Shown here: positions 13,238 to 36,267 of the stretch, piece after piece
Position numbering within the stretch: the first letter of the stretch is position 1
Layout of the letters: the number at the start of each line of letters is the position of its first letter
Assembly (NCBI GenBank): GCA_001600695.1
Contig: BCKQ01000002.1
Location: 1,980,935 to 2,020,850 of the forward strand
Length of the DNA: 39,916 bases
Source: Ascoidea asiatica JCM 7603
Taxonomy: Eukaryota; Fungi; Ascomycota
Direction: 5' to 3'
Program-made: the position numbers and the translations under genes
The notes under the pieces: generated by a model
What the model was told of the DNA's origin: nothing
The model's database searches: none
Seen by the model: the letters and a program-made list of their open reading frames with translations, nothing else

Positions 13238-15538
13238 ATGAATTATCACAATAGTAATAATATTAAAAATAATAATCATAATAATAAGTTTATAAATAAT
13301 AATAATAATATAAAGTTAAAAAAAAATGATAATAATATTGAAAATACTATTCCAGATTCAAAAAGATACGATGATCTAAAAACGTCTTTGAATAACATAA
13401 TGAATATCCATAAATATCAATTAAAACCATCGAGAAATAATATATCGACAGGTGAAAAAACTAATCAAACACTTAATTCAAAAAAAAATATAAAATTGAA
13501 CAATTTCAATAAAATTAGTAAAATAAAATTGAATAATGACAAAATTTCAACTATTTTAGGTGATCCTTTACCTTTGCTTTATAACACATCCAAGCCAAAT
13601 AATAATAACAGTATTAATAATAATGATAAAAATAGTAATAGTAATATCAATGCCAATGCTAATAATTTATATTCCCATGATATTCATAAAAAAGTCAATG
13701 AAAAAAAATTAAATACTCATCCATTTAATTTACCTAAAAAAGTTAAAATCAATAATTTTACCACAGTCAATTCACTTCAACCTACTCGTAATAAAATTGA
13801 AGCAAACATTCCTATCACAAATGAAAATAATCAAATATACAATACTAATGAAAAAACTAACAAAAGTAATTACATCAGTAACATAGATAAAGAAAAAAAG
13901 ATTTTATTCGATAAAGATTCATTAGTTAATTTTTTGAATAACAGATATAATTCAAACTCAACTCTTTTCAATAAACTTTCAAATAATTATACTAAACCCT
14001 CCAAAGCCTCGATTAATCAGCATTCAAATAAAAATAGTGCTAGTAATAAAAATGTTAACAACGTTCTTGACTATCATTTAAATAATCAAAGTGATAACAC
14101 TAATAATAATAATTATAATCATAATAACATTAATAGTAAAAATACTCGACCTTTATCAAGAGAATCAATTATGAATAAAAAAATTGAATTCAATAAAAAA
14201 TCTATTCAACAAAATTATATTAATCAAAATTTAAAAAAAAAAATTATCAATAATGATATTTATAAAAATACTAATAATAATAAAAGTATCACTAATGATC
14301 AAAAAGTGAAATCCGAAAAACAAAAAAATATTAGCTTGAATAATTTGAAAAATGAAATCACAAATGATATTAAACTGGAAATCAAAAACGACATTCAAAA
14401 TGATATACGGAATGATTTACAATTTCAAATTCATGATATTTTTCAACAATTGAAAGATACCATCAATCAAAATACAAACCATTATAATAAAAAAAATAAT
14501 GAGAATAATGATAGTAATAGAAATAACTTTATCGAAGAAACTGATATTGAAGATCATAGCCTCGATGATTCTGAAGTTATTCAAGATATAATTAATCAAA
14601 GTAATCATCAATTGTATAATAAAAATGATCTTTCAAATGATTCCTTTGCTAATTCTTCAAATACAAATCAATCTCTAATTAACAATTCTTTGAATAAAGC
14701 ATCATCAATCAAGAATTCTTTAACTAAGAATCAACACCAAACAGAAACCAAAATTAATGAAAATACTGATAATGTTGATAATGGTAAAACTCAAACTAAA
14801 TTTTCTAAGACGGAGACCTTAAGTGAAACTGAATTGATTTATTTGAAGAAATTTTTAAAAGACATTATAAATCAAACAGAAAAAAATTTTGATAAAAAAA
14901 ATGACAAGAAATCAAATAGTAAAGTTGAAAATGACATTGAAAATACCAAAAAGAAAGGTACTATTGAAAGTAATAATAATAATATTCTTGATAATAATAG
15001 TAATAATTTCAATAATAATATTTTGAGTGATTCAAATCATAATAACTCAGAAGATCTCATTAATTTCACCAATTTTATCAACTCAGTTGATTTTAAATCA
15101 AACTCTGAAATAGACTTAGATTTAAATTCAAATTCCCAATTACAATCAACTAGAATCGGAGGTGATTCAACGTATGATATATCATATAGTGATACTATAG
15201 AAACTAGTAAAGATAAAACGAAAGATGAGAAAATAATTGAAAAAAATGAAAAAAATGAAAAAAATATTAAAAATATCAAAAACACTAAAAATTTCAAAAA
15301 CAAGAAAATACTTGATAGAAGTTTTAGTTTAAATTTCAAAAAAGTTTCTGAAAAGTTTATGATTTTATTAGGATATATTTACTCATTTCTAATTAATAAT
15401 AAAATAATATTATTTATCTTGATTGGACTTTTAGTGAATTATTTATATTCATTGATATTTAATTATGACAAAGATTTCAATTATTATAAAAAATTGTTAG
15501 AGGAAGAGGAGGATGATGATGACTTTTTTTATTTTTAA
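13238..15538 (+). CDS. Asn-rich, largely disordered protein with short coiled coil and C-terminal membrane segment(s)
   Basis: 766-aa ORF. Hydrophobic FMILLGYIYSFL..KIILFILIGLLVNYLYSLIF near the end, followed by an acidic/aromatic tail. No family recognised. Confidence 0.75.
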   Translation: MNYHNSNNIKNNNHNNKFINNNNNIKLKKNDNNIENTIPDSKRYDDLKTSLNNIMNIHKYQLKPSRNNISTGEKTNQTLNSKKNIKLNNFNKISKIKLNNDKISTILGDPLPLLYNTSKPNNNNSINNNDKNSNSNINANANNLYSHDIHKKVNEKKLNTHPFNLPKKVKINNFTTVNSLQPTRNKIEANIPITNENNQIYNTNEKTNKSNYISNIDKEKKILFDKDSLVNFLNNRYNSNSTLFNKLSNNYTKPSKASINQHSNKNSASNKNVNNVLDYHLNNQSDNTNNNNYNHNNINSKNTRPLSRESIMNKKIEFNKKSIQQNYINQNLKKKIINNDIYKNTNNNKSITNDQKVKSEKQKNISLNNLKNEITNDIKLEIKNDIQNDIRNDLQFQIHDIFQQLKDTINQNTNHYNKKNNENNDSNRNNFIEETDIEDHSLDDSEVIQDIINQSNHQLYNKNDLSNDSFANSSNTNQSLINNSLNKASSIKNSLTKNQHQTETKINENTDNVDNGKTQTKFSKTETLSETELIYLKKFLKDIINQTEKNFDKKNDKKSNSKVENDIENTKKKGTIESNNNNILDNNSNNFNNNILSDSNHNNSEDLINFTNFINSVDFKSNSEIDLDLNSNSQLQSTRIGGDSTYDISYSDTIETSKDKTKDEKIIEKNEKNEKNIKNIKNTKNFKNKKILDRSFSLNFKKVSEKFMILLGYIYSFLINNKIILFILIGLLVNYLYSLIFNYDKDFNYYKKLLEEEEDDDDFFYF

Positions 15539-21477: not shown

Positions 21478-24366
21478 TCATAAATTCTCCTGATTCAATT
21501 CAGATAACAACCACGTTCTCCATAATTCACCAGCATCGCTTATTATATCTTCAATATCAGTGAAATTTTTATCAATTATATTCATTGGGAAAGGAGTAAA
21601 TTTGGACACAGGTTTACAGTATTTCTTTGTACCTATAATTAAATCTTCTTCACTGTTGAGAAAACCATTAGTATATAACGGATTACTACGTGTGGATTTA
21701 ACTTTATGCTTTACTCTTTTACTTGAAAATGGAGATGTGTAATTCAAATATTCTTTAATTTCAGATTCTTCTAATTCTAACAAAACATTTTCTTTTGATT
21801 TTAGCATTGACAAACAAATAAAAATGATTTCAGCATGAGGATCAATCTGAGAAAATGGAATATCGTAATGAATCTTTGAAGAAGTCAAAGTTGAATTACT
21901 TAAATTTTTTGAAGCCAGATCTTTTATTGAATTATCAATTTTTGTATGAATAGTAGCAGAATTTGTCTGATTGGTTTTTGATTTATGAGTATTGTTAATT
22001 TGGGTATGAAAATTATTGTTAGATGATGACTTTAAAGATAAATTAGATAATAATGTTGTTATTGAATTTCTATGGCCAGAATTGTAATTAATTTGATTAT
22101 TTCCATTAAAGTTTGTATTATCAGTAAAATTATCTTTATTGTTGGAATAATTATTACTCTGTATTTCATTATTCAATTCTTCTTCTGGAGCTAATGAATT
22201 CCACCAAAAATTATTAGGGCCTAAGGATTTTAATAATTCTTCATCATTTATGAAATCTATGAAAGGATTTGAATTTTCTATTTTTGTTGAATTTTGATTT
22301 GGATTTGGATTTTTACTATCACTTGACAATAAAGAATCAGAAGAATTTGATAGCTTAGAAGAAGAACTGGAATTAATAGAAGAAGAAGTTCTAATTTTTG
22401 TTAGATTATTAGTTAAATTGAAGTTAGAATTATCAGAAGATGAAGATCTTGAAGAGAATGAAGAATGTGAAGCATATGAAGAATAAAAAGATTCAGGTCT
22501 CCAAGATAATAAAATATCCCAAATTCTACCTCTATCAAATTTATTAAAAACTTTTGAACCTGACCATTTTAACCAATATAATAACCATTCATTATTTGTA
22601 TTACCAGAACTATTATTATAGAATATATTTTCTTCTTTTAAATAATTTGTTAATTCTGGTAACATATGACTAGTTAAATAAAGAAAAAAAGAAATTCTAT
22701 CATCAATCGAACCACCTTTTATTGGTAAAGTTGTGATTGAATTTATAAATTCAGTTGTTTTATTAGTTTCAGTTTTTTGTAAATTATTTGAATTGATTTT
22801 TTTAGACTGATTTTCATTATCTATTTTAATTTCAATTTTAGATTTATTATTTGTATCTTCATTAATTGTATGATCATATTCATTATCATTTTCATCTTCT
22901 TCCTCATCATCATATTCATCTTCTTCATCATCATCTTCTTCTTCTTCATCTTCATCCTCGGGTGGAGGAGAATGTAAAACAACTAAAACTAATCTTTCAT
23001 AAATTTCGGAGAATGATAATTGTTTTTTTTGTTTTTGTTTATCATTATTTTCAATATTATTATTATTATTATTATTATTAATATTATTTACATTGAAAAT
23101 AGAATTATTTAATTGTTGAAATTCATTATAATAGTAAGAAATATCTTTAATATCATTTGAGAAATTATCTAAGAAGTTTGGAAAATAAGAATTGAATTCA
23201 TTGAATGAATTTATTAAACAACTATTTTCATTTAAATTTGGATCATTAAAGAATAGATTATTTAAATTTGAATTAGAACTTATATTTGAATTTGAAGATG
23301 AATTTGAGTTTGAATTTGATGAGGAAGATGAAGAAGAAGTTGAGGCAGAAGTGGATGTAGAAGTTGAATAAGATATATTTGAATTTAATGAATTATTAGT
23401 TAAATAACTTGAATTTGATAAAGAGTTTAAAGAATTATTTGATAATTTATCATTAATTTTATCATTAAATTTATAATTTTGATTATTTATAATATTAGAT
23501 TGATTATTTATAATATTTTGATTATTTAATTGAAAAAAATTAGGAATATAAGTGGATTTTAAATTTAAAGGTATATATTTTTGAAAATTTTTTAAATTTA
23601 TATCTTTACCTAATAAAACATAATTACTATTAGATGTTAAATTTGTAGTATTACTAGATGTAAATGGAGAAATCCATTCAGCTAAAGATAAAGCTAACCA
23701 AGATAAACCAGATTCATATTTGAATATTCTACCCCATTTTTTTAAGAATTTAATTATTGAATATTCTAAGATTTTAAAAAATTTGATTTCTATAGTTGAA
23801 GATAAATTAGAATATGAGTTATTATTGGTATTATTACTGGAAGTATTATTGTTGTTATTATGATTATTTAAAAATAAATTTTTTCTTTGATATTTTAATA
23901 GATCTGATTTAATTTTGTCAATTGGAATTATATAATTATCTTTATCTTTATCTTTTTTATTATCATTTTGGATATTTTTTCGGTTATTTTCGTTGTTATT
24001 GTTATTGTCGTTTTCTTCATCATCATCGTCATCGTCGTCATCATCATCATCATCGTCGTCGTCTTCTTCTTCATCTTCAGTATCATGATAATTTGGATTA
24101 ATATAAGGATCTTTAACAAAAGGATGATTTTTTAATAATAAAGGCCAAATTTTAAATCTTAAAAAGGGAGGTAAACCTTTTTGTCTTGCAATTAAAGCTA
24201 AAGCATCAATATTATTATCATTAATGTATTTATAACATAGTTTGATTAAATTGAAATCATTTAAGATTGTTGAATTATTTACATTACTTGAAGTATTTAT
24301 GTTATTTGATTGATTGGAAGCGAATGAATTATATGAATTTTGAGAAGAATTATCAGGTATTACCAT
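21478..24366 (-). CDS. OCA5: Oca5 (TBC-like domain protein)
   Basis: LALIARQKGLPPFLRFKIWPLLLKNHP, FLKKWGRIFKYESGLSWLALSLAEW, FSEIYERLVLVVLHSP, LPELTNYLKEE, DRGRIWDILLSWRP, AGELWRTWL. Confidence 0.9.
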   Translation of the reverse strand: MVIPDNSSQNSYNSFASNQSNNINTSSNVNNSTILNDFNLIKLCYKYINDNNIDALALIARQKGLPPFLRFKIWPLLLKNHPFVKDPYINPNYHDTEDEEEDDDDDDDDDDDDDDDEENDNNNNNENNRKNIQNDNKKDKDKDNYIIPIDKIKSDLLKYQRKNLFLNNHNNNNNTSSNNTNNNSYSNLSSTIEIKFFKILEYSIIKFLKKWGRIFKYESGLSWLALSLAEWISPFTSSNTTNLTSNSNYVLLGKDINLKNFQKYIPLNLKSTYIPNFFQLNNQNIINNQSNIINNQNYKFNDKINDKLSNNSLNSLSNSSYLTNNSLNSNISYSTSTSTSASTSSSSSSSNSNSNSSSNSNISSNSNLNNLFFNDPNLNENSCLINSFNEFNSYFPNFLDNFSNDIKDISYYYNEFQQLNNSIFNVNNINNNNNNNNIENNDKQKQKKQLSFSEIYERLVLVVLHSPPPEDEDEEEEDDDEEDEYDDEEEDENDNEYDHTINEDTNNKSKIEIKIDNENQSKKINSNNLQKTETNKTTEFINSITTLPIKGGSIDDRISFFLYLTSHMLPELTNYLKEENIFYNNSSGNTNNEWLLYWLKWSGSKVFNKFDRGRIWDILLSWRPESFYSSYASHSSFSSRSSSSDNSNFNLTNNLTKIRTSSSINSSSSSKLSNSSDSLLSSDSKNPNPNQNSTKIENSNPFIDFINDEELLKSLGPNNFWWNSLAPEEELNNEIQSNNYSNNKDNFTDNTNFNGNNQINYNSGHRNSITTLLSNLSLKSSSNNNFHTQINNTHKSKTNQTNSATIHTKIDNSIKDLASKNLSNSTLTSSKIHYDIPFSQIDPHAEIIFICLSMLKSKENVLLELEESEIKEYLNYTSPFSSKRVKHKVKSTRSNPLYTNGFLNSEEDLIIGTKKYCKPVSKFTPFPMNIIDKNFTDIEDIISDAGELWRTWLLSELNQENL

Positions 24367-29072: not shown

Positions 29073-31281
29073 TCACATAATTAGATTGTCAATTTGTTTG
29101 AAGTTCTGCGAAAAATCTTCATCGCAGATAATCTCAAAAACTTCTTTGTTATCTATTAATTCTTTAAAAATTACAGTTCTTTTGTCCCTAGTTTTCTGTA
29201 AAATACAAGAAAATTTAATTTTTGAAGATTCTTTCCATACTATTGAATTTTTCAAAATCTCTTTAAATTCCTTTTCAAAGTTTTGAATCTCTTCAATTGT
29301 ACATTCTAAAACTTTTTTTATTGAAAATTCACAAAAATAATCAGTAATATATTGAAGATTTTTAGAAGGAATAGAAAAAATTTTAAATCCACTATTGAAA
29401 TTCCATTTAGGATAAATTTTATTTCTAAATTCACACAAAAATGGAAGTATTTTACTAATAATATCTTTTTCTTTTTCATCTTCTGAAATAACAATATTTG
29501 GTGCAAGAATTTTAATAACATTTTTATTTTCTAAATTTCTAATAATAAATCCAGGTCTTAATAACCCTTTATTATTACGAAAAATAATTAATTTACCAAT
29601 TGAAATATCCTTTGAAAGGCTCTTTTTATCTATCATTTCTTTAATTATCTTTAATGTCAAATAATCATATCTCAAAAACTTTCCATAAATTTGACACATT
29701 AACTTTATTGGAAATTTACTTTTATTCTCTTCTTTTTCTTCTTCCTTATCCTCGTAATCTTTTTCTTTCTCAACTATGGAATTGATTTTTGCTTCAATCA
29801 TTTTTAGCTTCTTTTTTTCTTCTGAAAGTGAATAGTAAGTTTTTTTCTCTTTCAACCCATTGAAGTTTCTAGACCTAAGTCTAAATTCATTTTTCTTCTC
29901 ATTTTTAAATTTTAATAATTCTAAAGCAAGTATAGAACTTCTCTCGCAAGCATCTGAAAAATTCCAACCTATTCCAATACTTAAATATTCTTCAATATTT
30001 TCACTCTCTTTTTCATTTTTTTGCTGTTGTTTTTTTGGAAATTTAAAACATAAAACAGAATAAGGATATTCTGAATCTGAAGAATTAGTCCATTTCCTAA
30101 ACTCAATTCCATATTCATCACCAATCAGTTTTTTCAATGACTTTATTGATTTATTTTTATTAGAAATTGATGAAAATTTAATCTTCATTGAATCCAGATC
30201 AATTAAAGAAGTATAATTAATAGATAATTTTAGAAAATATTTTTCAAGTTTTTCTAAAATAATTAAAGAATTCTTCTTTGTATTCTCAATTAATTTTTCT
30301 TTAACTAATTCTCTAGTTTTATCTTTATATTCAAAAATTACTTGATTATATATTGATAAAGTTCCATTTATATATCTTGAAACTTCTTGAGCATTCTCTG
30401 TGTTGAAAGTTGATGGGGTAAAACATTCTTCAAATTCAAATTGGGGAATTAAGTTAACATCATTTATTCTTACAAATTCATTATTTTTCTTTTCAATTTT
30501 ATTGTCAGCTTCTTTTTTATTGTTTTTTTTTCCATATTCTATACTATATTCGGTTTCAAAAATTCTTACCAATTCTTCAATTGAGCTAATATTTGATAAA
30601 TTTTGATCAATTTTCATATTTTTCAATTCAAACTTCACTATCTGATCAATCCATTGAAACAAACTATTATTATCTTGAAGAATTAATGATCCAATATAAA
30701 CTTTAGAAATTATAATAATTTCTTTTTTATATTCTTCATTACTTTTCTTCTTTTCCCCATTGAGAAAATATTCAAAATTATAATATTCTCCCAAATGAAA
30801 CAAAATATTTTCATATAAAATTTGATAGAATGAAACTTCTTTTAATGCTAAACCTAAGTTAATTTCCATCAAATACAATTTAAAACACTATTAAAATATT
30901 TGTAAACAAGCTCACCTAAAGGTTTATAAAAATTTAAAATCATAGACACATACTCAGAATCATTAAGCAGAAATAATTCTTCAATTAATAACTCTTCTCT
31001 TAGCAATCTTAAGGAAGGATACTCGTTTGTAATGCAATTTTCTTTTATTTTTTTTTTTCTTTTTCAGTTTTATTATTGATTAATTTAGAGCTTAATTTTT
31101 TTAAAAGAATTTGTGTATCCTGAGGTTTTGATTGAAGAAGTTCAACAAAAGATTTTTGAATCTCATCAATATCATTATGATTGTCATATGATCTTTTTGC
31201 TTTTTCGAGATTATAGAATTTATCAAGGTACTGTTTCTTCAATAAAAACTGTTTTCTTTGGAATTTTGATTGATAAGTCAT
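29073..31281 (-). pseudogene. Pseudo-Dicer/Ski2-arch fusion, copy 2; split by two -1 frameshifts (pseudogene, recoded gene or assembly error)
   Basis: The 78-aa ORF (KQYLDKFY), an unlisted middle frame 31048-30869 (IKENCITNEYPSLRLLREELLIEELFLLNDSEYVSMILNFYKPLGELVYKYFNSVL) and the 601-aa ORF together are collinear with the 878-aa paralogue. Confidence 0.75.
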
Positions 31282-31804
31282 GATAAATGTTTAATTTTTG
31301 CCCAGTTTCAGAAAAAAAAAAAAAACTTTAGCAATTGAATAGAAAAAATATAAGTAAAGATGTAGCTCTTTTATATAAAGAAAACTCTTCTAACTATAAT
31401 CATAGTTTCAAAAGAAGATTTATATGATTTAGTTTACAAAAGTATAGAAACAAAGATAAGTTTTATAAAGGAAATCAATGACCAAGAATTATTCGGAAAA
31501 TAACAAGATTTAATTGTTTCCCATTCTGAAAGTTCAAATCTTAGAAAATAATTATAATAATTTTAAAGTTGCCTAAAACAGAAATTTATGTACAAATTTT
31601 GCAGAAAGCAAGAAAGCCCAGTTCTATGTGTGTGGCTGCACCTAGAGCCAAACACTAAACGGCTTTAAGGGCTTTCAGGACTTTGTGTTTTTGTTTTTGA
31701 AAAATTTCATTTATTCAAATCTTTCAACATACTAAGAGAAAATACTCTCTAATAAAGTGAAAATGAAATAACATATCTCAGAGAAAAAAAATTACAAAGT
31801 AAAG

Positions 31805-34441
31805 CTAAATTAGTAATCGATTAAATTCTTCGTCAAGTAGTTTGAAATTTCTTAAAAAGCTTTCACGTTCTACAATACTCGGAAATTTTCTGAATTCCTT
31901 TTTCAATTCTTTGGCTATTTTTTTTCTAAAATAATCAAGACTGTCTCTAATACTACCAACACCAACTGAAGGAACTTCTTCCCAAACAGAAAAATCATTA
32001 AGAATCTTTTTTGTTTCCAATTCCAAGAGACGTAATTCTTTGAAATTATAAGTGGAAATTTTTTTTATAGGTAGAGAACAAAAATTACATGACATGAATC
32101 TTAGTTTATCAGGAGTAACCTTACATGAATTAAAACCATTAATTTCATAACCCCATCTAGGAAATAATGTATCTTGTAATTCAGGAATAAAAGGAATTTT
32201 ACTAAATCGAATATTTTTTTGCTTCTCAGTTTCAGAAAGTTTTACATTGGGAAATAAAACCAAAAAAATATTTTTATAAACATTAAAATTAATTAAAAAA
32301 CCAGGCTTAAGATACCCTTCATTATTTTCAAAGAGAACTAGTCTTCCAGCAGTATTATTTTTACGTATTTTTTTCATAATATATCTCTGTATTCTTTCAA
32401 CCAAAAGTATATTACATTGATAAAATAGTTCATAAATTCTCAAAAGAGCTAATTTTGAATACAGAAACTGGTCTATAAAATGGTCATTAATTTCATGTCC
32501 AGTATTTAAGGTTAATTTTAGTATTTTGCTTTCACCCATAGTAATTTCTTTCATTACTTTTGCAAGAGAGCTTTTATTTTGATTATCCTTTAAAAGAGAT
32601 TTCCACTTTTTATCTCTGGATAATTCGACTAGTTCAATTGCAATCAATGAACACCTTTCCCAAGAGTCTTCATCGCTCCAGCCAAATCCAAAACATAAGT
32701 CGAACACATTTTCTTTATCATTATTATCAGAAATTGAGCAACGTGTTTTATAAATATTTCCTAATTTATTTTCTTCTTCAGGACTTAAAATTAATCCATC
32801 AAAGCAAAACGTGAAATCTTCATCATTTATCAACATATCCTCTAAATAATCTGCCCAAATAAAATCATTTACCGTTCTTGACTTTAACTTGATTAATTCT
32901 GAGATATTGATTTTAGTTGAGCTTGAATCAAGTTCAGATGTACATCTTATACTTAGATCAAATAAGTATTTATCAATATTTTTGTAAGCTGAAAACTTAT
33001 TTAGCGAAAAGTTTTCAAATAATTTTTCTGCAGCAATTTCAGCATTTTTTCCCACACAACTTAATACTAAAAATCCAAAAATTTTTAGATCAGCTTTAAC
33101 TGATGTCAGTGATTCATTACCATTTGAAGATACATTTGAATAACTTAATTTAAAAGGAAAAAGTTGTTCACCAATTCTTACATTAATATTCGATTTGTAT
33201 GGAGACTTTTCAGCTTCTGAATTATCTTGATCTTCTTGATCTTCTTTAATTTCTTGATCTTCTTTAATTTCTTTAATTTCTTTTACATCTTTAATTTCTT
33301 CAACATCTTCAACATATTCAACATCTTTAATTTCTTCAACATCTTTCGTTTCTTTTACTTCTTTTACTTCTTTTACTTCTTTTGCTTCTTTTGCTTCTTT
33401 TGCTTCTTTTACTTCTTTTGCTTCTTTTGCTTCTTTTATTTCTCTAATTTCTTTTACTTCTTTAGTTTTTTTGATTTCTTTTACTTCTTTTACTCCTGTA
33501 ATTTCTTTAGATTCTTTAGCTTCATGAAGTCCACTTAATTCTTTTGGCTCGATTTTCTTTTTACGTTTTTTCTTATTACTTTTTTTAGTTTTCTTTTTCT
33601 TGGAGTTTAATCTAAGCTCATTGCCAGTATTCCCAGAGTTCATTTCGTTTATTTCCCATAAATAAAATTCTGTTAGAATATTGAAAGAAGTTCCGGCTAG
33701 ACTAATTTTTTCAAGTTTCATTAAATCATAGACCCAATCAAGTAAATCTGATTCTGATTGTTTTGCCAAAGAGCCTGTAAATGCTTGAAAAAGCAAACAT
33801 AAATTAACATCGAAACTTAAGTTTGAAAATATCTCAGTGAAATCCTCACTAACTTCCAAAGAATCCTGTAGTTTATTTTTTGGCTGTTTAATCAAAAAAT
33901 ACTGAAAGTTATAAAGTTTTGCCCATTTGACTAAGTTTTGCCTTGAGTAAATTTTACAAAATAAGAAATTCTTTAGTTTTTTGATTGTAATACTGGTTAA
34001 AATTGCACTAAACTTTTTTTTAAAAGTTTTTCGTGACAAGCTTAAAAATTGAGAATTTAAATTCAGTTTGAAGGAAACATTGAGATTGTTATCGACATTG
34101 AATAATTCTAAAAGAATTTTTTCATTGGTTAGTTTAATTAATTTTGGATATTCTATTTCAGCATCATTTTTTAATTTGATATTTTCAATATTTGATTCAC
34201 TGGATTTTCCGGATTCTAAAATTGAATTTGACAATTCGATAATAGAATTTGTTTTATTTTTGTTCAGATAAACTAACTGTTCATTCAATTGATAAAATTT
34301 ATCAAGATATTTTTTAATTGAAGCAACCTTCACACCTTCATCTTCAAGTTTATTTTCAATTTCAGTTTTGAATTCGGTTTGCTTTTCAGGAAAAATCACT
34401 TCGTAAGAAGAATGAAGCTCGTTACTTACATTCAATTCCAT
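31805..34441 (-). CDS. Pseudo-Dicer/Ski2-arch fusion, copy 1: inactive RNase III + 2 dsRBD-like + Ski2 arch/KOW domain
   Basis: aa~97-243 resemble the Rnt1/Dcr1 RNase III (YPKLIKL..ELF, NLVKWAKLYNFQYFL, LFQAFTGSL, DLLDWVYDL). dsRBD-like ends at LVLSCVGKNAEIAAEKLFEN and LCFGFGWSDEDSWERCSLIAIE. aa~620-878 resemble the Ski2 insertion (GRLVLFENNEGYLKPGFL, IPFIPE..LFPRW, ELETKKILN). Confidence 0.75.
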   Translation of the reverse strand: MELNVSNELHSSYEVIFPEKQTEFKTEIENKLEDEGVKVASIKKYLDKFYQLNEQLVYLNKNKTNSIIELSNSILESGKSSESNIENIKLKNDAEIEYPKLIKLTNEKILLELFNVDNNLNVSFKLNLNSQFLSLSRKTFKKKFSAILTSITIKKLKNFLFCKIYSRQNLVKWAKLYNFQYFLIKQPKNKLQDSLEVSEDFTEIFSNLSFDVNLCLLFQAFTGSLAKQSESDLLDWVYDLMKLEKISLAGTSFNILTEFYLWEINEMNSGNTGNELRLNSKKKKTKKSNKKKRKKKIEPKELSGLHEAKESKEITGVKEVKEIKKTKEVKEIREIKEAKEAKEVKEAKEAKEAKEVKEVKEVKETKDVEEIKDVEYVEDVEEIKDVKEIKEIKEDQEIKEDQEDQDNSEAEKSPYKSNINVRIGEQLFPFKLSYSNVSSNGNESLTSVKADLKIFGFLVLSCVGKNAEIAAEKLFENFSLNKFSAYKNIDKYLFDLSIRCTSELDSSSTKINISELIKLKSRTVNDFIWADYLEDMLINDEDFTFCFDGLILSPEEENKLGNIYKTRCSISDNNDKENVFDLCFGFGWSDEDSWERCSLIAIELVELSRDKKWKSLLKDNQNKSSLAKVMKEITMGESKILKLTLNTGHEINDHFIDQFLYSKLALLRIYELFYQCNILLVERIQRYIMKKIRKNNTAGRLVLFENNEGYLKPGFLINFNVYKNIFLVLFPNVKLSETEKQKNIRFSKIPFIPELQDTLFPRWGYEINGFNSCKVTPDKLRFMSCNFCSLPIKKISTYNFKELRLLELETKKILNDFSVWEEVPSVGVGSIRDSLDYFRKKIAKELKKEFRKFPSIVERESFLRNFKLLDEEFNRLLI
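33224..33525 (-). repeat. 9-bp coding minisatellite (KEA/KEV/KEI/EDQ tripeptides) inside the 878-aa ORF
   Basis: Tandem TCTTTTGCT/TCTTTTACT/TCTTTAATT units on the + strand; absent from the paralogue. Confidence 0.9.
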
Positions 34442-36170: not shown

Positions 36171-36267
36171 GCCTGGCTAGCGTAATGGTTAACGCGTCTG
36201 ACTTCTATAAGAAATAACTTTCAATAAAGTCATCAGAAGATTGTGGGTTCGACTCCCACGTCGGGTG
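36171..36267 (+). tRNA. tRNA-Arg(UCU) with 24-nt intron (36208-36231)
   Basis: D arm GCGTAATGGTTAACGC, anticodon arm TCTGA-CT-TCT-A/A-TCAGA, T arm GTGGG-TTCGACT-CCCAC, acceptor GCCTGGC/GTCGGGT, poly-T terminator. Confidence 0.93.

Follow-up and report, generated by a model that had tools for sequence, protein, structure and literature searches.

What is encoded by a gene that ends in the arch of the Ski2 helicase and carries no helicase? This question is raised by two neighbouring genes of the budding yeast Ascoidea asiatica JCM 7603, here called P1 and P2, which lie in a stretch of 39,916 nucleotides (the window, whose positions are used throughout unless another contig is named) on contig C2 (BCKQ01000002.1) of a 71-contig, 20.3 Mb assembly. 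The window has a GC content of 24%, and the two genes are adjacent paralogues, both on the minus strand, flanked by an aldo-keto reductase gene and OLE1. They are very probably tandem members of a lineage-specific, fast-evolving family that derives from the budding-yeast ribonuclease Rnt1/Dcr1, is catalytically dead, and in this pair has captured the arch of the genome's own SKI2. The architecture ascribed to the family as part of this reading is a dead RNase III domain followed by two or three modules that resemble double-stranded RNA-binding domains (dsRBDs). The intact copy, P1, is laid out as follows; structural details of the modules come from AlphaFold2 (AF2) models, with the predicted local distance difference test (pLDDT) as their measure of confidence.

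31805-34441, minus strand: P1, ATG start, 878 codons and a stop, intact
34172-34441, minus strand: residues 1-90, helical N-terminal region that bears the family motif YL-x-KFY
33689-34150, minus strand: residues 98-251, RNase III-like domain, probably catalytically dead, recognised by profile-profile comparison with Rnt1/Dcr1
33197-33634, minus strand: residues 270-415, low-complexity insert, a basic K/R cluster and then K/E-rich repeats
32933-33190, minus strand: residues 418-503, dsRBD-like module A (dsRBD-A), beta strands and then a long helix, alpha-1 not evident, AF2 pLDDT 54-73
32612-32866, minus strand: residues 526-610, dsRBD-like module B (dsRBD-B), alpha-beta-beta-beta-alpha topology in the AF2 model
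31808-32614, minus strand: residues 610-878, complete Ski2 arch with ascending stalk helices, beta-barrel and descending stalk, ending at the stop codon

The C-terminal ~265 residues of both proteins are a complete Ski2 arch without the helicase core. PF21409 (Ski2_beta-barrel) is the sole Pfam family matched by the pair; P2 scores above the cut-off of 27.9 bits (36.2 bits, E = 7.9e-9) and P1 just below it (25.4 bits, E = 1.9e-5). The Pfam families DEAD, Helicase_C and DSHCT gave no match at E up to 10 in either protein, and thus the RecA/DExH core is missing. Across the genome, PF21409 is found in exactly three places, which are SKI2, P1 and P2. Residues 610-873 of P1 align with the intact SKI2 of 1282 codons (E = 4.2e-21, 24% identity), and the similarity is restricted to SKI2 residues ~802-1063. 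When aligned, the three arches correspond over the ascending stalk, the barrel and the descending stalk, at which P1 and P2 end. A profile made from them recognises residues 807-1052 of Saccharomyces cerevisiae Ski2 (E = 2e-19) and the insertion-domain crystal structure 4A4K (E = 1.9e-13). The same structure is the top Foldseek match of the AF2 model of P1 416-878 (E = 4.6e-6, prob 1.00), followed by Ski2-Ski3-Ski8, the ribosome-bound Ski complex, human SKI and Mtr4.

To our knowledge, every Ski2/Mtr4 arch described so far is an insertion within a helicase, whose motor it regulates and which it docks on ribosomes or adaptors. In P1 and P2 the whole module is kept, with boundaries close to those of the crystallised Ski2 insertion domain (4A4K, PF21409). 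Unlike in Ski2, it is accompanied by no RecA1/RecA2 DExH core, winged helix or helical bundle, is fused to dsRBDs, and retains 23-26% identity to the arch of the own Ski2. Both Pfam and Foldseek rank it nearer to Ski2 than to Mtr4. The arch of Mtr4 belongs to the same fold class and provides a precedent for an arch as a binding module, since this arch/KOW domain docks adaptor proteins (Nop53, NVL, NRDE2 and Red1 complexes).

Where the arch came from can be read from its barrel. The motif N-N-x-G-Y/L-L-K/R-P-G-F is common to P1, P2 and the genome's own Ski2 and is not present in S. cerevisiae Ski2, which suggests capture from the lineage's own SKI2. Because that gene is a single open frame, the capture would have been a partial gene duplication rather than exon shuffling. 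The arches have since diverged to 28.6% identity between P1 and P2, 22.8% between P1 and own Ski2, and 25.8% between P2 and own Ski2. We infer that the common ancestor of P1 and P2 gained the arch by such a partial duplication, joined directly after dsRBD-B; the last helix of dsRBD-B is predicted by AF2 to pass without a break into the stalk of the arch. The economical reading has a single capture that preceded the tandem duplication. In a tree of the N-terminal halves, with the pieces of P2 joined by X, P1 and P2 are sisters (support 85/89), a grouping rendered uncertain by terminal branches that are all about 2 substitutions per site long.

A fusion that is found in two neighbouring genes of one assembly invites the suspicion that the arch was joined to a dsRBD gene by misassembly. 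This is scarcely credible here. Nothing speaks for such a chimera beyond the repeat inside P1, at which short-read contigs break. Logan contigs of three public runs from two studies, which may derive from one strain, cover 29073-33379 with 0 differences and 0 gaps; single contigs span dsRBD-B and the arch in both copies, on which ground the chimera was rejected, and the two diverged copies share the junction. Since the contigs of all three runs are identical, both dsRBD-arch junctions, as well as the frameshifts of P2 described below, are real in the sequenced DNA and not consensus errors.

The open frames themselves are far longer than chance would allow. With a stop probability of 8.75% per codon, a run of 878 codons is expected with a probability of 1e-35, and one of 601 codons with 1e-24. 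Lengths so far beyond chance in DNA of 24% GC indicate that P1 and P2 are real genes. An alternative reading of CUG would alter P1 little, because it contains only 4 CTG codons.

P1 and P2 were described in the sequence-only reading, an earlier inspection of the bare letters, as two adjacent, heavily diverged same-strand paralogues with shared motifs. The open reading frames, a search within the genome (P1 against P2, E = 3.5e-32, 29% identity over P1 370-871) and the alignment bear this out. As a count of genes the description stands for P1, which is intact; P2 is not one open frame, and is split by two -1 frameshifts into three pieces.

29073-31281, minus strand: P2, tandem paralogue of P1, full span
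31048-31281, minus strand: piece A, ATG and 78 codons that include the YLDKFY motif, with an A11 run at the end
30872-31063, minus strand: piece B, 64 codons in another frame, the start of the presumed dead RNase III domain with the E-Y-P-S-L motif
29073-30887, minus strand: piece C, 604 open codons (601 counted over 29073-30878), the second half of the presumed dead RNase III domain, dsRBD-A, dsRBD-B and the arch (at about 29076-29900), with an internal ATG at 30869

The first shift, from A to B, falls in the A11 run near 31050, and the second, from B to C, near 30880 at ...ATT TGA.... Both lie within the first ~140 codons of P2. An intron was considered as the cause of the second shift, as GTATGT occurs nearby, and was rejected; splicing would remove sequence that aligns with P1 and with P3, a further paralogue introduced below. 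Piece B likewise aligns with P1 and P3. The shifts could mean that P2 has decayed recently, that transcription slips on the A run, or that a start at the internal ATG at 30869 is used. P2 would then be either a young pseudogene or a gene expressed from the internal ATG.

The identity of the N-terminal half is less apparent than that of the arch. Comparison of profiles supports the view that in P1 and P2 it is a degenerate, catalytically dead RNase III domain of Rnt1/Dcr1 type. The reference profile consisted of 54 sequences, relatives of the genome's own 665-residue enzyme. Against it, the hhalign score of the family N-domain rose as members were added: 63.5% with three rows (P = 6.8e-5), 80.4% with nine (E = 1.3e-5) and 93.6% with eleven (E = 2.2e-7), the last over 140 collinear columns that span the whole RNase III domain. 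Column shuffles reached at most 18.6 compared with 38.9 for the real alignment, or 19.3 compared with 55.3 for the 11-row profile, and control pairs of unrelated profiles from the same genome gave P values of 0.57-0.88. Block shuffles still matched the same RNase III segment in 87 of 100 cases. As homologous blocks survive this treatment it is not a valid null, and the persistent match indicates that the signal comes from particular motifs rather than from composition. The family keeps the structural positions P266 (P of the P-P-L-P start), F281, Y352, G383 and W405, in the numbering of the own Rnt1.

The catalytic residues have gone a different way. The four catalytic acids of RNase III are E40, D44, D107 and E110 in Aquifex numbering. 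At the aligned positions P1 has L, R, L, Q, P2 has G, Y, I, K and P3 has C, N, T, K; of the whole alignment, the signature-motif region is least certain. At the position of E110, 8 of 10 members have K, P1 has Q and M4 has V; the position of D107 is non-acidic in 9 of 10, M8 having D. None of the 10 family members keeps all four acids.

Two dsRBD-like modules are predicted to follow this domain. In the AF2 model, P1 530-624 forms a clean alpha-beta-beta-beta-alpha fold with a pLDDT of about 55-73. With the model of P1 1-625, the top Foldseek matches are tandem-dsRBD proteins aligned over ~185 columns (Loqs-PB at E = 7.7e-4, TARBP2, DRB4, MLE, R2D2 and TRBP). These matches are independent of the RNase III hypothesis, because the alignment given to AF2 held paralogues only. 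Structural alignment of P1 513-617 by VIA-align yields Staufen dsRBD5 (Z 6.7, root-mean-square deviation 2.8, 70/70 residues), TARBP2 dsRBD3 (Z 6.6) and the Aquifex RNase III dsRBD (Z 5.9); a Z of 6-7 is reached by common folds too, and hibernation factors of similar alpha/beta fold score alongside the dsRBDs. Profile comparison adds a sequence-level link, since the family alignment of dsRBD-B matches dsRBD1 of Rnt1/Dcr1 in hhalign (81.1%, E = 1.2e-5). Module A of the paralogue M7 approaches Pfam dsrm at E = 0.003, below the cut-off.

At the level of these profiles, P1 thus repeats the order of budding-yeast Rnt1/Dcr1, an RNase III-type domain and then two dsRBD-like modules. It is unlike the enzyme in its replaced catalytic acids, in having no match to PF18497 (RNase_3_N) in the Pfam scan, which was blank for this family in P2 as well, and in its K/E-rich insert and added arch. 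This composition is the one that the sequence-only reading had put forward, with an N-half modelled on Rnt1/Dcr1, an RNase III that does not cut, two dsRBDs, and a C-terminal Ski2 arch lacking the RecA/DExH core. All four parts have held: the first through an hhalign match that is invisible to Pfam, the second through the replaced acids of P1 and P2, the third through the fold matches and the profile match of dsRBD-B, and the last through PF21409, the own SKI2 and 4A4K.

Whether the modules bind RNA is a separate matter, and bears on the first functional proposal to be weighed. The dsRBDs might bind double-stranded RNA (dsRNA) of viruses or transposons while the arch delivers it to ribosomes or to the Ski-exosome, so that the family replaces lost RNA interference (RNAi) and expands under genetic conflict. 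Some observations are as this sensor would have them. The modules have the folds of tandem dsRBDs; the family evolves quickly and has many copies and a wealth of pseudogenes, a pattern that conflict would lead one to expect; and certain paralogues keep canonical dsRBD residues, namely M7 with its near match to dsrm and M6 and M8, the only members in which the conserved lysine of helix alpha-2 in dsRBD-B (K-K-x-A-K region) is still K. No match to Piwi was obtained in a six-frame search of the assembly, and hence there is no sign of Argonaute or of a canonical RNAi pathway. The SKI genes are antiviral in yeast and take their name from the superkiller phenotype (PMC8860381).

The details of the modules argue the other way. 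In dsRBD-B the alpha-2 lysine has given way to E (P1), S (P2) or L (P3), and P1 carries an acidic D-E-D at the start of this helix; these replacements make RNA binding by dsRBD-B doubtful. Among its best structural matches are Staufen dsRBD5 and the dsRBD3 of TRBP/Loqs, type B domains that bind protein and not RNA, and these and P1 dsRBD-B are alike in having no basic alpha-2 motif, as far as a low-confidence model allows the comparison. dsRBD-A seems to be without helix alpha-1. Budding-yeast Dicer works with Argonaute, and the missing Piwi match leaves a regulator of Dicer, the other role once suggested, with no evident RNAi pathway to regulate; one of the two fusion copies is also broken. 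Moreover, we know of no link of an isolated arch to Ski3, Ski8 or the exosome. A dsRNA sensor is therefore improbable.

Beyond the pair proposed in the sequence-only reading, P1 and P2 belong to a birth-and-death family. At least 11 loci were found in the genome, many of them pseudogenes, and the arch is present only in P1 and P2. The other members are the following.

contig C45: P3, 566 residues, N-half only
contig C36: M4 and M5, a tandem pair with no obvious start
contig C57: M6 and a fragment
contig C2: M7 and M8
contig C10: M9, a fragment
contig C14: M10
contig C66: a stop-ridden copy

The N-terminal motif YL-x-KFY recurs in P2, P3, M6, M8 and M10, and in the P1 model residues 1-90 form helices, at low confidence. 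In M4 (L027:1042-2211) and M8 (L029:1073-3124), a third dsRBD-like module, read by eye, occupies the place where P1 and P2 carry the arch. From this position it appears that the arch may have replaced a module.

A family of this kind also raises the possibility that the fusion has no selected function at all. It might be a by-product of birth and death, with P2 dying and P1 still open but without a specific role for its arch. The broken P2, the stop-ridden copy, the fragments on contigs C57 and C10 and the absence of an obvious start in M4 and M5 would all be expected, as would the extremely long branches and the lack of any orthologue in the searches made. Open frames of 878 and 604 codons, far beyond chance at 24% GC, are not. 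Nor is the retention of the core motifs of the arch in both copies at an identity of about 29%, and this retention implies that purifying selection acted for a long time once the gene had been duplicated. Taken together, these make a functionless fusion distinctly improbable.

The genome has other members of the wider RNase III group, against which the family can be placed. Of the separate SKI2, DCR1/RNT1 and AGO1 genes that the sequence-only reading had envisaged alongside the pair, an intact SKI2 and an active-looking Rnt1/Dcr1 are indeed present, whereas for the third the Piwi search was blank. A search for PAZ was blank also, and its controls gave no match either. Rnt1/Dcr1 lies at C30:30055-31674, is of the dual type known from Candida, and has two dsRBDs; its closest relatives, in Pachysolen, Priceomyces and Candida, share 33-40% identity with it. 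Just upstream, at C30:27313-28325, is a decayed tandem copy, split by stops, in which the RNase III domain can still be recognised (E = 1.9e-47 to the profile). The genome also encodes a mitochondrial RNase III-like protein. Finally, there are two apparently dead Dicer-like genes of a less degenerate kind. The gene on contig C6 (L033:859-3264) encodes 801 residues with both dsRBDs well kept, and has I, K, E and Y at the four catalytic positions, as read by eye and not with an alignment tool. The gene on contig C17 (L038:1865-4312) encodes 815 residues, of which only the N-terminal domain and the last dsRBD are recognisable. Between the family profile and the C6 protein the match reaches P = 3e-4, and a derived G-A-L-x-x-Q motif is common to both.

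Dead Dicer paralogues as such are already known. Cdl1 of Candida is a catalytically inactive RNase III paralogue of CaDcr1 whose function is not known (PMC3579876, PMC11047096). Like the P1/P2 family, it is a Dcr1-type paralogue with altered metal-binding or catalytic residues that stands beside one active dual Rnt1/Dcr1. It differs in that it is described as a single gene, in contrast to at least 11 loci with a far more degenerate N-half, and in that a Ski2 arch, present in P1 and P2, is unreported for Cdl1 in these two papers. The C6 and C17 genes are likelier counterparts of Cdl1 than the P1/P2 family, a comparison in which Cdl1 was represented by its description only.

This background, together with the low-complexity insert of P1, brings in another functional proposal. 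Between the RNase III-like domain and dsRBD-A, 39 of 146 residues are K and 35 are E. The repeats are encoded by a 9-bp minisatellite (32.4 copies at 33232-33523, 78% matches, Tandem Repeats Finder), at which the contigs of all three runs break and word depth is up to five-fold higher. P1 is the sole carrier of the insert, which in the alignment is missing from P2. K/R clusters followed by K/E repeats are typical of nuclear or nucleolar RNA-processing proteins, and the basic cluster, which resembles a nuclear localisation signal, would fit a nuclear site better than a cytoplasmic SKI site.

P1 could accordingly be imagined as a nuclear or nucleolar modulator of Rnt1/Dcr1, the dead domain pairing with the enzyme or competing for its stem-loops, and the arch touching pre-ribosomal RNA in the manner of Mtr4, with the result that pre-ribosomal RNA or small nucleolar RNA processing is tuned. 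RNase III domains work as dimers, and in the family the conserved blocks coincide with the core helices of this domain. The signals in the insert resemble nuclear or nucleolar ones, the own enzyme belongs to the dual Candida type and has two dsRBDs, and Candida keeps the dead paralogue Cdl1 beside its dual enzyme (PMC3579876). The arch, however, is of the Ski2 type and not the Mtr4 type, and Ski2 is cytoplasmic. At least 11 diverging copies would also be odd for the stoichiometric partner of one essential enzyme. For these reasons a role in Rnt1/Dcr1 modulation is regarded as unlikely.

What P1 does instead may follow from its arch. For 80S ribosomes the arch of Ski2 has been described as "a major interaction site"; it binds ribosomal RNA through its KOW fold and restrains the helicase (PMC8860381). 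P1, which would cut nothing, might be a motor-less scaffold at the docking site of Ski2; this is put forward tentatively, as a mechanism that could well be wrong. Since the Ski2 arch is a major 40S contact and binds ribosomal and other RNA, the arch of P1, detached from its motor, could dock the protein at the SKI site or close to it, on the 40S subunit or on RNA of ribosomes or pre-ribosomes. Association with itself or with a partner, and perhaps binding of structured RNA, would fall to the dead RNase III domain and the dsRBDs. P1 would thereby act in trans as a competitor or adaptor at the Ski2 docking site and modulate 3'-5' decay or surveillance. Every step of binding and function in this scheme, like the single capture of the arch, is something that we infer. 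It is tempting to go further and speculate that a yeast without RNAi has built, within a conflict-driven family, a trans-acting, motor-less arch factor that occupies the 40S SKI docking site and controls the entry of ribosome-bound or viral RNA into 3'-5' decay, and we regard this extended version as improbable.

Several observations weigh against the reading of P1 and P2 as dead Rnt1/Dcr1 derivatives with a captured arch that works as a motor-less scaffold. Firstly, Pfam, BLASTP and HMMER find no RNase III match in the N-half of P1 or P2, and BLASTP of P1 and P3 against the own Rnt1/Dcr1 is not significant. Secondly, the models are poor, with a mean pLDDT of 41.6 for P1 1-625 and 44.8 for P1 416-878, and AF2 leaves the RNase III-like domain unfolded, so that this fold rests on the profile comparison. 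Thirdly, the second copy is broken by its frameshifts and the family around it is rich in pseudogenes, and thus the fusion may be drifting. No RNA run among the public runs searched contains the locus. No orthologues of P1 or P2 were retrieved. To these may be added the nuclear character of the basic cluster, the lost alpha-2 lysine of dsRBD-B and the uncertain grouping of P1 with P2. With identity and mechanism taken as one, the explanation offered here stands about an even chance of being correct.

The extent to which the fusion occurs elsewhere was explored in protein, structure and literature collections. A word-indexed search of a 5.8-billion-protein collection with whole P1 returned one low-complexity match, and the arch region of P2 compared with proteins of 330-1051 residues in the same collection returned nothing. 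With HMMER, the N-half profile found only K/E/V-repeat matches among 1.84 billion representatives. In the ESM Atlas, P1 416-878 gave nothing, while P1 85-265 gave top matches to DUF3871 at chance level and some RNase III clusters lower down, a lead only; the fold search of the Atlas reached a TM of 0.25 or less. Sequence searches of the PDB with P1 and with the N-half profile gave nothing. Ten long Rnt1-like database proteins (600-814 residues) were considered as possible arch carriers and rejected, as none has PF21409. These blank results say little about orthologues in related species, because the proteins of this genome are, by exact look-up, themselves absent from the protein collections. 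A full-text literature search returned no record of a fusion of a dead Dicer with a Ski2 arch. The earlier impression that no protein with such an architecture has been described agrees with all of these searches, and it is the arch fusion, rather than the dead paralogue, that is without record in them.

The pair is of interest in three respects. It extends the little-studied dead Dicer paralogues to an expanding family that is able to recruit new modules. It exemplifies, in a budding yeast, the capture of a domain out of the interior of a gene that has no introns. And a natural arch-only protein would offer a tool and a test case for what an arch does alone, in binding the 40S subunit, in competing with SKI or in binding RNA. 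All three points depend on P1 being expressed and binding a partner of some kind.

Elsewhere in the window, two long open reading frames, 13238-15538 (plus strand, 766 residues) and 21478-24366 (minus strand, 962 residues), match no Pfam family at E = 0.001. Rfam recognises a tRNA gene (55.1 bits) at 36171-36267 on the plus strand, between the aldo-keto reductase gene and a sugar-transporter-like open reading frame; it probably contains an intron, because it takes up 97 bases for a model of 71 positions.

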